This document shows positions 37,605 through 48,027 of a stretch of DNA of 64,000 nt, in pieces. The position numbers and the translations under genes are program-made. The DNA is taken from sequence record LC727697.1. One strand, written 5' to 3'. The notes under the pieces were generated by a model that saw only the letters and a list, made by a program, of their open reading frames with translations, ran no database searches and was not told the DNA's origin. Each line of letters starts with the position of its first letter. Position 1 is the first letter of the stretch.

Positions 37605-38216
37605 TTAGCCATTCTCTTCTCTTACTTTTTTTGCAATCACTTTAAACAATCCTGGATTTACTTTAAGTGCTTGAGGAATTATATTATGTCGAATTTGATT
37701 TCTATTAAAATTAGTGTCTCGGTTACTAGGATCTTCTAACCATTGTACACCATTACTTTTCGCATATTTTTTAAATTCGTTTTTTGTAGTAAGCATAAAC
37801 GGTCGGATGACATTTTTTTTCCGATACGGAATGATACGAGGCGAACCGTGCATACTATAAAACAACCACGTCTCTACGTTGTCGTCTAGTGTATGTGCAG
37901 TCATGATTTCTAATTCATGAGAGTGCAGAAATTTATATCGTTCGTTTCGCCAATGTTCTTCCCAACTGCAACCTTTTGGTTTTTTTGTGTTAATGCAGTA
38001 TACATGGCAATTTATTTTATTGTCGCTACAATAATCTCTCACAAATTGCTCTGCTTTGATATCATACTCCGATCCGTGGTTTACATGAAAGACATCGAAG
38101 TTATTTTGTGGATATTTCTTTAAGAAGGACAATGCAACCATAGAATCAATACCGCCCGAAACAGCGATACCAAATTTCTGTCCATAATATGCAATGGGTT
38201 TTACTAACTTAATCAA
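37605..38216 (-). CDS. tilS: tRNA(Ile)-lysidine synthetase, catalytic domain only
   Basis: PP-loop AVSGGIDS, HVNHG, R.ERY, TAHTLDDNVET, IRPF, W.EDPSN.D..FNRN.IRH. Confidence 0.9.
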   Translation of the reverse strand: MIKLVKPIAYYGQKFGIAVSGGIDSMVALSFLKKYPQNNFDVFHVNHGSEYDIKAEQFVRDYCSDNKINCHVYCINTKKPKGCSWEEHWRNERYKFLHSHELEIMTAHTLDDNVETWLFYSMHGSPRIIPYRKKNVIRPFMLTTKNEFKKYAKSNGVQWLEDPSNRDTNFNRNQIRHNIIPQALKVNPGLFKVIAKKVREENG

Positions 38217-38218
38217 AC

Positions 38219-38518
38219 CTAATATCCTTCCTTCATAACTAATCCAAGTACATAAGAAAAATTACACGATTCTAAACCAGTTCTTAAACTTTTTCTATAT
38301 ATATGATATGTAGTTAAGGTATCATCAGTAGTAACTGACAAGAATACCATATTGCTCCAGATATATATACATTTATAGTTCAACGATATGCGTTGTAACG
38401 CTAGTATGCTGTACATGTTTTTATGCACTGTATTGTTAGCTGTATTAGCGTTATACATGCGTTTGCACGTTATTGCAAACTTGCGTATAGCATAATGCAA
38501 ACGTGCAAAATAACGCAT
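38219..38518 (-). CDS. hypothetical protein
   Basis: GAGG SD; 5' half lies in a GA/TC-free tract. Confidence 0.55.
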   Translation of the reverse strand: MRYFARLHYAIRKFAITCKRMYNANTANNTVHKNMYSILALQRISLNYKCIYIWSNMVFLSVTTDDTLTTYHIYRKSLRTGLESCNFSYVLGLVMKEGY

Positions 38519-38521
38519 TTT

Positions 38522-38818
38522 TTAAATTCCTCTTATTTTATTAATTTCCCGCTCAACGGATGTCATAGCTCTACTAAAGGAAATATAAATGTCAGTGTCG
38601 TATAACCTCCATACAACAAATCTATATCTAACTAGAAATTTTATATATGTATACTTAACAGATATAAAAGATATATAAAAAATAGAATTAACTTTAATAA
38701 ATCTAGTTTCATTATTGATAAATGGGTATTCCTTGCCATAAATTTCGCACAAAAATGCCCCTTCGGGATTATCACCTACATAATACAATATCGGTTTCAT
38801 TTTAATTATATTTGCCAT
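38522..38818 (-). CDS. hypothetical protein
   Basis: ORF in operon. Confidence 0.55.
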   Translation of the reverse strand: MANIIKMKPILYYVGDNPEGAFLCEIYGKEYPFINNETRFIKVNSIFYISFISVKYTYIKFLVRYRFVVWRLYDTDIYISFSRAMTSVEREINKIRGI

Positions 38819-38992
38819 TCAGGAAAGACACCCATACATCCGTCTTGAGATACGTACAAATACCTACCATACTTATCTGACTTTGTAACGTATACCCATG
38901 CCTTTTTAATGTTTAATCCGAAAATATAAAAAGTTATGGTTGTAGTATTTGCACAAATTGAATAGTTTAGTATTAAACTCATACTATACCTC

Positions 38993-39214
38993 TTACCAAT
39001 ACTTTTTTCTTCGTTTATTCTTCGGTAACAAATGTTCCCCGGATAATTTTTTTATCATTTGCCGTTGCTGCTCTTGTGCAGTTTGTTTACAAGACTTAGA
39101 ACAATATAGTCCCCAACCTCTTTTAACATCGGCAATTCTTACTTCGAATACATTATTACATTCTATATTATTGCATGTTATTTTAGTTTTCTTTCCCCTA
39201 GGCGTTGTTGACAT
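38993..39214 (-). CDS. small zinc-finger protein
   Basis: C...C ... RGWGLYCSKSC. Confidence 0.7.
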   Translation of the reverse strand: MSTTPRGKKTKITCNNIECNNVFEVRIADVKRGWGLYCSKSCKQTAQEQQRQMIKKLSGEHLLPKNKRRKKYW

Positions 39215-39303
39215 TTAATTACTCGCAACAATACACTGTGTATTAGAATGCACAGTGTATATTATAGATAGTTGAATGCATGACTTACTTTGTTTCTTAC
39301 TAT

Positions 39304-39332
39304 AAAAAAAGGGCACAATGTGCCCTTTTTTT
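39304..39332. terminator. bidirectional intrinsic terminator
   Basis: AAAAAAAGGGCAC-AAT-GTGCCCTTTTTTT. Confidence 0.85.
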
Positions 39333-40298
39333 ATATTTTACTTCTTGCCAGTGGAAGAAGTAATAATTTCTTTACCGCAAACAGTGCAACGATAGCCCTT
39401 AGTAAACACGTTATGCACACGATTACCTTTGCCGTACACACTGTCCTGGAAATCATGTGCGCATTTGCACGATTTGATATTATCCACGTTTACCTCTGCT
39501 AGTTAATGTGTTGAGTGTTTAGTATACTGTTTTATAACAACGAAATCTAGCATTTTTTTAAATTCTTATAACTGGTCCAGCCTAAGCCCCCTATTTCATG
39601 CGAAATATAAGTTGTATAATCATAATTACCTATACTCATCGATCTTGTATCATAAATCATACGTCTATACAAAACTATCCCTTTTTCTCCCCGGACCCAT
39701 ATACATGTATATATGGTACTTGGTTCTATGCATATTTGGCGTGCATTATAAGACAGTTTTAGGATCATATTTAGTTTTTACCTTAGCAAAAATAAATCCA
39801 AAATCATTTACAAATGATATAATGTAAACTGTATTACCTTTTATGTCTTTTTGTACATGTTCTACTATATGTAATTTTATAGAATTATACGATAATCCTA
39901 TAATAGAGGTATTGAAATTTGGATTATATGACATATTAGAATCCTTCTTATATGCAAATATTTATTGCTTAGATTCTTAATATATTATATCTATTAATAC
40001 GTTATAATGTAATTCAGAGACATTCAGGTTATATTTGTTTTCTAAATATAATCTCACTAAGTTTGTTTAGTGTTATTATCTTTTTTAGATTTATTTTCAT
40101 TTCTTTCTTCTATACAAAACGATAATAGGTTTATAACAGTTGGTAGTAAGCAACATGTAGCTAAATTAGAAACAATGTCAATTCTTATTAAACTATATAT
40201 TTTATTAAAAATGGAAATAAAAAAATTAGAATATTTAATAGAAACAACGATTGTACTATTTCTAACTACTCTAGATAATTTACATAATAATGATAGAT

Positions 40299-40529
40299 TC
40301 ATTTGTATAACTTATTTCTCAGATCAAACAACGACTGGCATTCCACACATTTTGTTGCACTTGGTAGTATACGTTTTCTTTCTTCTCCTATTTCTTCTCC
40401 GCAATCTATACATTCGGTATAGCCAGAATTTCTTGCCATTTCTTTTCGTATTTTACTTACAGCTTTTTCTACAATTTGTTCGTGGGTTTCAGCAAGTCCG
40501 CTGTCATCTATATCAAATTCTGAACTCAT
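40299..40529 (-). CDS. TraR/DksA C4-type zinc-finger protein
   Basis: Acidic N-helix DIDD, CIDCGEEI.EER...LP.A..CVECQ; start MSSEF at 40529. Confidence 0.85.
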   Translation of the reverse strand: MSSEFDIDDSGLAETHEQIVEKAVSKIRKEMARNSGYTECIDCGEEIGEERKRILPSATKCVECQSLFDLRNKLYK

Positions 40530-40600
40530 AAAACATTTCCTTGTTATTAAACGTCCATTATTTATTATTTGTATAATAGCATAAGAAAAATAAAAATACA

Positions 40601-40636
40601 ATAAAACATTGCCCGCATTAGCGGGCAATGTTTTAT
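40601..40636. terminator. bidirectional intrinsic terminator
   Basis: AAAACATTGCCCGC-ATTA-GCGGGCAATGTTTT. Confidence 0.85.
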
Positions 40637-47293: not shown

Positions 47294-47325
47294 AAAAAAG
47301 GAACATACCATAATATGTTCCTTTT
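47294..47325 (-). terminator. intrinsic terminator
   Basis: AAAAGGAACAT..ATGTTCCTTTT. Confidence 0.75.
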
Positions 47326-47334
47326 GTAGGAGTT

Positions 47335-47419
47335 TGGTGCCCGGTGCCAGACTCGAACTGGCACGACTTTCGTCGGGAGATTTTAAGTCTCCTGTGTCTA
47401 CCGATTTCACCAACCGGGC
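47335..47419 (-). tRNA. tRNA-Leu(TAA) copy 1
   Basis: Cloverleaf with variable arm, CT-TAA-AA, CCA. Confidence 0.97.
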
Positions 47420-47469
47420 ATATTCATTCATTATATAGTTTAAGTATAGTTTGATTTGTATATAAAAAT

Positions 47470-47546
47470 TGGTGGGACTTACTGGATTCGAACCAGTGAC
47501 CTAGCGATTATGAGTCGCGCGCTCTAACCAACTGAGCTAAAGTCCC
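47470..47546 (-). tRNA. tRNA-Ile2(CAT, lysidine) copy 1
   Basis: Anticodon arm GCGA-CTCATAA-TCGC like enterobacterial Ile2 (C29-G41, G30-C40); CCA. Confidence 0.85.
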
Positions 47547-47615
47547 GTTTGAAACATTATATGAATATTTTATTTAGACTATTGTATCTCTTTAGATACA
47601 AATGTTATTTAAAAT

Positions 47616-47691
47616 TGGTGCCGACTGTGGGATTCGAACTCACGACCTACTGATTACAAGTCAGTTGCTCTACCAGCTGAGCTAAGACGGC
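47616..47691 (-). tRNA. tRNA-Thr(TGT)
   Basis: Cloverleaf, CT-TGT-AA, CCA. Confidence 0.95.
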
Positions 47692-47717
47692 ATATTGAAT
47701 ATACAACAAAGTGTAAT

Positions 47718-47793
47718 TGGCTGGCTAGGTAGGACTCGAACCTACGACCCAATGATTAACAGTCATTTGCTCTACCGACTGAGCTACTAGCCA
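47718..47793 (-). tRNA. tRNA-Asn(GTT)
   Basis: Cloverleaf, CT-GTT-AA, CCA. Confidence 0.97.
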
Positions 47794-47843
47794 TTTAATT
47801 TTAGAATAGTTTCCTATCTTGTTAAGTATTTATATCTTTTGTT

Positions 47844-47928
47844 TGGTACCCGAGACCGGACTCGAACCGGTACGCTGCGAAGCGGGAGATTTTAAGTCTC
47901 CTGTGTCTACCAATTTCACCACTCGGGC
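47844..47928 (-). tRNA. tRNA-Leu(TAA) copy 2
   Basis: Cloverleaf with variable arm, CT-TAA-AA, CCA. Confidence 0.97.
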
Positions 47929-47950
47929 TAAAAGCACAACATCTTAAAAT

Positions 47951-48027
47951 TGGTCCCTCGAACTGGATTCGAACCAGTGACCTAGCGATTATGAGTCGCG
48001 CGCTCTAACCAACTGAGCTACCGAGGG
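47951..48027 (-). tRNA. tRNA-Ile2(CAT, lysidine) copy 2
   Basis: D, anticodon and T arms identical to 47470-47546; different acceptor stem CCCTCGG/TCGAGGG. Confidence 0.85.

Follow-up and report, generated by a model that had tools for sequence, protein, structure and literature searches.

We analysed a 64-kb stretch (hereafter the window) of the 287-kb genome of Pseudomonas phage sp. 30-2 (LC727697.1), in which a gene for a short lysidine synthetase of 203 amino acids (aa), here called mini-TilS, and two tRNA genes with the anticodon CAU, here called tRNAs A and B, probably form a phage-borne module for decoding AUA codons. The source phage was recognized by megablast, with the same coordinates as the window, and the Wroclawvirus jumbo phages PA5oct, MIJ3, and eight more, all of Pseudomonas aeruginosa, showed 97–98% identity to it. 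This reading builds on the observed domain architecture of the enzyme, its family membership by sequence and fold, the features of the tRNAs, the codon usage, and the linkage of the enzyme to CAT tRNAs in other phages. The original prediction, made from the letters of the window, had called the module self-contained; this was overstated, because the isoleucyl-tRNA synthetase (IleRS) and other enzymes of the host would still be required.

The mini-TilS gene is located at 37605–38216 on the minus strand (stop codon included), starts with TTG, and encodes the N-terminal PP-loop catalytic domain only, with the SGGIDS PP-loop at residues 20–25. The protein scored 131.4 bits with TIGR02432 (lysidine_TilS_N, the equivalog model of the TilS N-domain) against a cutoff of 93.6, and its only Pfam match was PF01171; no TilS family matching it was found in PHROGs. 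The TtcA and TtuA models gave 21–31 bits, TtcA scoring 20.7 against a cutoff of 272. An AlphaFold (AF2) model built on 25 homologues had a mean pLDDT of 94, and ranks 1–6 of its comparison with the PDB were occupied by 2E21, 1WY5, 2E89, 1NI5, and 3A2K (TMq 0.79–0.83), that is, by TilS structures of Aquifex aeolicus, Escherichia coli, and Geobacillus kaustophilus, with the TtuA and NcsA thiolases lower in the ranking. Taken together, the sequence and the fold support a TilS-type PP-loop enzyme rather than a thiolase. A TtcA/TtuA-type thiolase identity was ruled out by the low scores and by the lack of a conserved cysteine among 25 family members. The original prediction had itself named a 2-thiocytidine or other PP-loop enzyme as the competing possibility, and the TilS folds fitted best.

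The profile of the family covers residues 25–228 of the 317 aa of A. aeolicus TilS, 13–201 of the 433 aa of the E. coli enzyme, and 20–221 of the 464 aa of the G. kaustophilus enzyme, and in this alignment the C-terminal end of mini-TilS coincides with the start of the linker helix in canonical TilS. The N-terminus (MIKL…) agrees with the family consensus. In all 11 PA5oct-like records, which represent 10 distinct phages, the protein is 99.5% identical, the sole mismatch being the TTG start codon. The lack of the C-terminal domains had already been pointed out in the original prediction and was borne out by the single Pfam match and by a hidden Markov model (HMM) of TilS C-terminal regions from 74 bacterial proteins, which had zero matches in the six frames of the window, of the PA5oct locus, and of 80 viral loci; it proved to be a trait of the whole family. 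Pfam detected no TilS domain in the five open reading frames (ORFs) flanking the gene. A split TilS was rejected, as no homologue of the C-terminal domains was found in the neighbouring ORFs or in the six frames of the 64 kb of the 287-kb genome and of the 15-kb PA5oct locus. None of the five flanking ORFs had a homologue near the mini-TilS genes of other phages, so no conserved protein partner emerged among them.

Canonical TilS enzymes are divided into type I, with the C-terminal domains CTD1 and CTD2, and type II, with CTD1 only, and every TilS is said to bear one or more C-terminal domains for tRNA binding (PMC11947777). Mini-TilS falls outside this scheme, having neither domain. Homologue searches returned hundreds of proteins of 195–210 aa with 43–55% identity, and in all of them a conserved NPGLxKVxxKK helix is followed by the end of the protein. 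The mean identity within the family is about 45%; SGGxDS is among its invariants, cysteine is absent from the invariant and near-invariant columns (25 members), and family-specific motifs such as EExWRxERY depart from canonical TilS. Since the motifs are invariant across such a large and divergent family, purifying selection is indicated. An exhaustive profile search yielded 2,341 clusters (50% identity) at E ≤ 10−30, the top 150 being nearly all of 180–230 aa, and at least 523 IMG/VR contigs carry a relative. In a maximum-likelihood tree of N-domains, 27 mini-TilS proteins made up one side of a branch with an SH-aLRT of 100. The family of about 200-aa proteins is thus a third TilS architecture, consisting of the catalytic domain only, and, as judged from the tree, mini-TilS is a member of one well-supported clade and not a fragment.

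In 78 species-representative cellular genomes, the TilS ORFs were 307–645 aa long with two exceptions of about 206 aa, found on contigs assigned to a Halobacteriovorax metagenome-assembled genome (MAG) and to a Pelagibacteraceae single-cell genome. Among the cellular genomes, these two provide the closest matches to the mini family, each with a CAT tRNA 320–570 bp downstream. Because short hits were limited to 2 of the 78 genomes and a Saccharimonadales genome has a TilS of 484 aa, a housekeeping enzyme of the candidate phyla radiation (CPR) was rejected as the identity of mini-TilS, and the family was treated as mainly viral.

The proposed substrates, tRNA A (47951–48027) and tRNA B (47470–47546), are both on the minus strand and 77 nt long, with an encoded CCA and A73, and C34 of their CAU anticodons lies at window positions 47993 and 47512, respectively. 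Both were called by ARAGORN and by Rfam (66.3 bits for A and 72.6 bits for B). Together with the alignment, these calls confirmed the original description of two CAT tRNAs that carry C29-G41 and G30-C40 and have the same body on differing acceptor stems; its count, on the other hand, was one short, as a third CAT tRNA, tRNA C, exists at 45339–45415 on the same strand. tRNAs A and B differ at 12 positions, every one of them in the acceptor stem, where six of the seven pairs are replaced with pairing kept throughout. They are identical over the remaining 62 positions, discriminator included (nucleotides 8–66 and 74), and in the encoded CCA. For 12 differences placed at random over 74 nt, the probability that the 14 stem positions receive all of them is P = 4 × 10−12. 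The sequences flanking A and B are unrelated, and tRNAs A, B, and C are each 100% identical in 11 of 11 related genomes. The shared body forms an exact repeat (47479–47539 and 47960–48020) at which de Bruijn-graph contigs of related phages are interrupted, in DNA as well as RNA runs, and short-read assembly and mapping of the tRNA cluster need care.

In all 11 related GenBank records tRNAs A, B, and C are annotated as tRNA-Met, just as the original prediction had anticipated for Ile2-like tRNAs. Our comparisons suggest that A and B are most likely Ile2-like and were mis-annotated. Their anticodon arm, CGCGA-CUCAUAA-UCGCU, is that of E. coli ileX over nucleotides 28–43 and unlike that of metT (CAUCA...UGAUG). 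The best match of B among complete E. coli genomes was a Shiga toxin (Stx)-prophage tRNA, annotated by PGAP as tRNA-Ile(CAU), with 87% identity, and many of the phage matches to A and B are annotated as tRNA-Ile, others as Met. A reference set of 10 experimentally used bacterial tRNA-Ile2 and 8 elongator tRNA-Met was taken from the supplement of PMC12514573. The loop CUCAUAA was present in all 10 tRNA-Ile2, 7 of which have a non-Watson-Crick 27:43 pair; the elongator tRNA-Met have a Watson-Crick 27:43 pair in 6 of 8 cases, and 5 of the 8 do not keep CUCAUAA. The C27×U43 of A and B is also found in the tRNA-Ile2 of Borrelia burgdorferi, Helicobacter pylori, and Mycoplasma penetrans. The identity elements of E. 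coli IleRS include A73, U12-A23, and C29-G41. Both A and B carry A73, the D stem G10C11U12C13/G22A23G24C25, and C29-G41.

tRNA C has a C1×A72 mismatch, A73, the pairs G2-C71/C3-G70, the purine11:pyrimidine24 pair G11-C24, and a Watson-Crick 27:43 pair. Of the three G-C pairs typical of initiators, its anticodon stem has two (G30-C40/G31-C39), 29:41 being A-U. The most fitting reading is a phage-encoded initiator-like tRNA, which is not a proposed substrate of TilS.

The acceptor stems of A and B were compared with those of the host. The host tRNA-Ile2 has GGGCCUA/UGGGCCC (3:70 G-C, 4:69 C-G, 5:68 C-G), and the host tRNA-Met has GGCUACA (3:70 C-G, 4:69 U-A, 5:68 A-U). In tRNA B the stem is GGGACUU/AAGUCCC, with G1-C72 and 3:70 G-C, 4:69 A-U, and 5:68 C-G, and in tRNA A it is CCCUCGG/UCGAGGG, with C1-G72 and 3:70 C-G, 4:69 U-A, and 5:68 C-G. 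Type I TilS needs the 4:69 pair together with 5:68 in E. coli or with 3:70 in Burkholderia cenocepacia, and deletion of CTD2 from the B. cenocepacia enzyme abolished acceptor discrimination while tRNA-Met was still rejected (PMC11947777). Both A and B are without the C4-G69 pair of type I recognition; this counts against their use by the host enzyme and not against an Ile2 identity. Since deletion of CTD2 relaxes discrimination in B. cenocepacia and neither A nor B has C4-G69, the shortened enzyme may plausibly be insensitive to the acceptor stem, which would have let the two tRNAs diverge. The phiKZ-like phage OMKO1, which grows on the same host, carries a CAT tRNA with an Ile2-type arm whose acceptor stem, GGGCCUA/UGGGCCC, is identical to that of the host tRNA-Ile2. 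No TilS was hit by tblastn in phiKZ-like phages, though the same search picked up distant bacterial TilS. Tentatively, a phage that relies on the host TilS would keep the host stem and a phage with a domain-less TilS would not, which fits the original prediction.

The comparative data on other phages come from the 80 best viral loci, with a flank of 10 kb on each side. The anticodon CAT was found in 31 of the 45 tRNAs within 200 bp of mini-TilS as against 18 of the 301 farther off, and after the removal of duplicates the odds ratio was 34 (Fisher p = 3 × 10−17). A CAT tRNA within 200 bp and on the same strand, typically 20–85 bp away, was present in 29 of the 80 loci. The TilS-linked tRNAs have in common a UAGCUCAAU-GGUUAGAGC D arm, a CUCAUAA loop, A73, and mostly G30-C40, and their 27:43 pair is often non-Watson-Crick; the CAT tRNAs farther from TilS include initiator-like ones. 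Of the comparative arguments for a phage CAU tRNA as the likely substrate of the enzyme, this co-inheritance is the strongest.

The demand for AUA decoding was assessed from the codon usage of 98 ORFs of the window, which has a GC content of 32.3%; that of the host P. aeruginosa is about 66–67% (PMC7318152; PMC12514573). AUA occurs at 52.8 per 1000 codons, which makes up 52% of the Ile codons and ranks it as the second commonest codon overall, and among the Leu and Ile codons UUA and AUA, respectively, rank first. In P. aeruginosa PAO1, AUA occurs at 0.9 per 1000 codons and is absent from highly expressed genes, and the type I TilS of this strain has a kobs/KM of 0.3 per µM per min versus 5.0 for that of E. 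coli, being about 17-fold less efficient (PMC12514573). The suggestion in the original prediction that limits of the host TilS might be involved fits these figures. In the mini-TilS loci of other phages, the median AUA frequency was 16.4 per 1000 codons, with more than 10 per 1000 in 70 of 76. The other tRNAs of the phage read UUA, AGA, ACA, GGA, CCA, UCA, AGY, and AAY, mostly A/U-ending codons that are abundant in the window, and a tRNA with lysidine in the anticodon (LAU) is predicted to complete this series for AUA.

The mini-TilS gene itself has AUA in only 2 of its 15 Ile codons compared with 52% window-wide (binomial p = 0.003, for a small sample), with other A-ending codons at ordinary levels. 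This fits a need for its translation before AUA decoding is boosted. Low proportions of AUA, 0–9% of Ile codons against a window median of 55%, were also seen in the minus-strand ORFs at 2674–3321, 12053–12487, 18824–19528, 8007–8354, and 8957–9289. These may be early genes that precede the supply of phage tRNA and TilS, or recent acquisitions.

From the sequences we infer the following course of events, which includes lysidine formation on A and B, acceptor-blind recognition, and charging with Ile. The phage, with 32% GC and AUA as about half of its Ile codons, would meet a host that is nearly without AUA and whose type I TilS is slow, which would be why it supplies two copies of a tRNA-Ile2 precursor with the anticodon CAU. 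To these it would add its own lysidine synthetase, cut down to the catalytic N-terminal domain. The enzyme would convert C34 of A and B to lysidine, after which the tRNAs would read AUA and not AUG and would be charged by the host IleRS and not by the methionyl-tRNA synthetase (MetRS). With CTD1 and CTD2 missing, mini-TilS would recognize its tRNA by the anticodon arm alone and thus be indifferent to the acceptor stem, and because of this proposed indifference C4-G69 could be dispensable in both phage tRNAs.

Several observations weigh against such a module. In this phage the TilS gene and tRNAs A and B are not adjacent but 9–10 kb apart, with about 9.3 kb to the nearest. In other phages most TilS-linked tRNAs keep C4-G69, and freedom of the acceptor stem is therefore not general. 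The same pair, missing from A and B, is reported as a weak identity element of E. coli IleRS. In addition, C3-G70/U4-A69 of tRNA A is as in the host tRNA-Met, and both A and B have G26 and A44, which are commoner in the Met reference set. An enzyme made up of the catalytic domain only would also have to reject tRNA-Met and tRNA-fMet. Lastly, a covariance model built from 27 TilS-linked CAT tRNAs ranked A and B with ileX but did not cleanly separate Ile2 from elongator Met: it scored B at 82.7 bits, ileX at 80.3, A at 75.0, metT at 72.8, ileZ at 69.0, initiators at 55, and tRNA C, the lowest of the CAT tRNAs, at 48.1. As metT scored near A and ileX, the model was not used as isotype evidence.

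The similar scores of A and metT would be expected if A and B, or A alone, were elongator tRNA-Met and mini-TilS acted only on the host tRNA-Ile2, raising its modified fraction. The Met annotation in all records, the acceptor pairs that A shares with the host tRNA-Met, and the fact that the phage otherwise has no elongator tRNA-Met are all in line with this possibility. However, AUG is not rare in the host, whereas all other phage tRNAs serve host-rare codons, and the anticodon arm is as in ileX and not as in metT or the host tRNA-Met. Moreover, as the arms of A and B are identical, modification of only one of the two would hardly be within reach of an enzyme lacking acceptor-reading domains, and across phages mini-TilS is physically coupled to this very type of CAT tRNA. 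We therefore regard the elongator alternative as unlikely. An equally low probability is given to a change on the side of the enzyme, in which mini-TilS would be a TilS-derived PP-loop enzyme with another chemistry or target (another amine on C34, or another cytidine), or an inactive remnant in a phage dependent on the host TilS. All TilS enzymes studied have at least one C-terminal domain (PMC11947777), the family has motifs such as EExWRxERY that are unlike canonical TilS, PHROGs offers no matching TilS family, and the amine used as a substrate is unpredictable from sequence. These arguments are countered by the TIGR02432 score above the equivalog-domain cutoff, by the invariance of the PP-loop and further TilS motifs throughout a large family of about 45% identity, by the lack of a conserved cysteine for Fe-S thiolation, by the tight linkage specifically to CAU tRNAs, and by the absence from A and B of the acceptor pair used by host-like type I enzymes.

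Two further explanations concern the acceptor stems. One core with differing stems can equally come from gene conversion between old paralogues. The divergence of the stems would then have followed, as a side effect, from concerted evolution and gene dosage, rather than from specialization or an acceptor-blind enzyme: old tRNA-Ile2 paralogues, copied along with Leu(UAA) in response to the demand for AUA and UUA, would have been homogenized over the inner 59 nt, while the 7-nt ends escaped. This account, to which we assign somewhat less than an even chance, touches only on why the stems differ and is compatible with an AUA-decoding module. The [CAT, Leu-UAA] unit is indeed present twice; the Leu(UAA) copies differ at 18 of 85 nt, scattered along the molecule, so the duplication is old, and yet the CAT cores show zero differences. 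The unrelated flanks around A and B and the position of AUA and UUA as the commonest Ile and Leu codons agree with it as well. On the other hand, the conversion tract must have its two ends precisely at the borders of the stem, conservation of both stems is 100% across 11 genomes with 2–3% divergence elsewhere, the Leu pair shows no conversion, and neither stem has the host-type C4-G69. Evasion of a host defence or toxin that targets tRNAs by the second stem variant is very improbable in our opinion. Two stems on one body are unusual, and in other systems phage tRNAs are known to escape cleavage by anticodon nucleases. The anticodon loop (CUCAUAA) and stem are nevertheless canonical and identical in A and B, leaving the evasion of anticodon nucleases proposed in the original prediction without support; nothing in the window or the related loci points to such a defence system, and we know of no nuclease specific for tRNA-Ile2.

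tRNAs A and B belong to a cluster of 12 tRNAs at 43800–48027 on the minus strand (ARAGORN, Rfam), which comprises Ser GCU, Ser UGA, Gly UCC, Pro UGG, the fMet-like tRNA, Arg UCU, two Leu UAA, Thr UGU, Asn GUU, and the two CAU tRNAs. In the block at 47335–48027 (minus strand), the order is A, Leu(UAA), Asn(GUU), Thr(UGU), B, Leu(UAA), with both the CAT and the Leu(UAA) genes duplicated. Just upstream of tRNA A, at 48054–48093, are two overlapping sigma-70-like promoter matches with 10 of 12 consensus positions each, and a terminator-like hairpin with a T-run follows the second Leu(UAA) tRNA at 47296–47325, both features being on the minus strand and consensus matches only. RNA-seq contigs from PA5oct-infected cells span the cluster with a depth range of roughly 1000-fold, and the authors of the PA5oct study reported that tRNA sites were validated by RNA-seq (PMC7318152). 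Between the TilS gene and the cluster, at 40299–40628 on the minus strand, lies a gene whose product is annotated in PA5oct (EST35_0424) as a DksA/TraR-family zinc-finger protein, which is of interest for a phage dependent on the host RNA polymerase.

The cassette of mini-TilS and CAT tRNA was also found on a contig of a Candidatus Spechtbacterales MAG, with the tRNA 56 bp downstream, and on a 428-kb contig, with the tRNA 53 bp downstream. In the former (L003:8001–8757, GCA_040879075.1), it is located at the contig end beside MreB, a penicillin-binding protein (PBP), GreA, a class II aminoacyl-tRNA synthetase (aaRS), and DNA polymerase III gamma, and could represent a TilS belonging to the cell, an integrated piece of a phage, or a binning error. 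In two other loci (L009:5615–5772 and L010:9789–9946), two differing CAT tRNAs stand side by side directly upstream of mini-TilS, one Ile2-like and the other distinguished by its unusual D arm (UAGUAUAAUUGGUGAAUGC); these loci give another example of paired CAT tRNAs, in this case on different bodies. A transfer-messenger RNA (tmRNA) is present within a few kb of the cassette in many contigs (L020:5308–5609, L024:16411–16805, L025:13250–13611, L034:9218–9526, L036:721–1028, and L007:18478–18822), and L007, a contig of 306 kb, has 39 tRNAs and the tmRNA in 13 kb. In two related phage contigs of 148–181 kb (L026 and L027:12460–12533), a tRNA with the amber-suppressor anticodon CUA, labelled 'Pyl' by ARAGORN, is located about 2 kb from mini-TilS and hints at stop-codon reassignment in these phages.

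Among known enzymes, the type II TilS of A. aeolicus (PDB 1WY5/2E21/2E89), Mycobacterium smegmatis, and H. pylori are closest to mini-TilS, with a TMq of 0.83 and 29–30% identity. They share the motifs of the PP-loop ATP-pyrophosphatase N-domain and the absence of the acceptor-reading CTD2, but have a long linker helix and CTD1 and are 307–378 aa long in the genomes sampled. Type I TilS (E. coli MesJ, 1NI5; the G. kaustophilus TilS-tRNA complex, 3A2K; P. aeruginosa) has a homologous catalytic domain and presumably the same C34 reaction, but is at least 415 aa long with both CTD1 and CTD2. The TtcA/TtuA/NcsA thiolases have the same Rossmann-like PP-loop fold (TMq 0.68–0.80) and need Fe-S clusters ligated by cysteines, of which none is conserved in the mini-TilS family. 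With respect to the tRNAs, T4-like phages, Stx phages with ileZ, and the phiKZ-like OMKO1 have an Ile2-type CAU tRNA, usually mis-called Met, and use AUA more than their hosts do, both as here (PMC1524935). Those phages rely on the host TilS, whereas the present phage brings its own enzyme and has two non-host stems.

The mis-calling of phage tRNA-Ile2 genes as Met has long been known (PMC1524935), and the mini-TilS gene was published in 2019 as gp263 of MIJ3 and gp433 of PA5oct (PMC6892783). In the MIJ3 paper it was described as a TilS homologue new to phages, of unknown function and perhaps keeping the host viable, and three tRNAs were called Met (PMC6892783). Other viral TilS proteins include ORF84 of RsoM2USA (349 aa) and those of pelagimyophages and of 39 of 41 chloroviruses, and for the chloroviruses a role of the viral TilS in AUA decoding has been proposed. 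Neither the MIJ3 nor the PA5oct paper mentions the link of the enzyme to the CAT tRNAs or the missing domains. Relative to the literature searched, four points appear to be new: a distinct monophyletic class of TilS with the catalytic domain only, a cassette of this enzyme and a CAU tRNA in hundreds of phage contigs, the likely role of two of the three 'tRNA-Met' genes of PA5oct as substrates, and the occurrence of one tRNA body with two non-host acceptor stems. A bolder proposal, which we make tentatively and consider well short of an even chance, is that the proteins of about 200 aa are a third class of lysidine synthetase with a single origin, which recognizes tRNA-Ile2 by the anticodon arm alone and has spread from phage to phage as a two-gene AUA cassette with its own tRNA(CAU). 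The PA5oct-like phages would have exploited this freedom to maintain A and B as two isoacceptors of one body with orthogonal acceptor stems, both tRNAs being invisible to the host type I TilS, which would place AUA decoding under the control of the phage alone.

How a TilS without CTD2 distinguishes tRNA-Ile2 from tRNA-Met is an open question in the field (PMC11947777), for which a catalytic-domain-only family with the substrate gene adjoining offers a minimal system. For genetic-code engineering of AUA, the mini-TilS and its tRNA likewise make a small two-part tool. Two genes now annotated as tRNA-Met would also have to be renamed in at least 11 genomes of phages that are candidates for therapy. 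The codon bias of PA5oct was described as 'not fully explained' by its own tRNAs (PMC7318152), and a phage-borne AUA-decoding module would explain this puzzle and, more generally, how a phage of 32% GC grows in a host of 66% GC with minimal AUA decoding.

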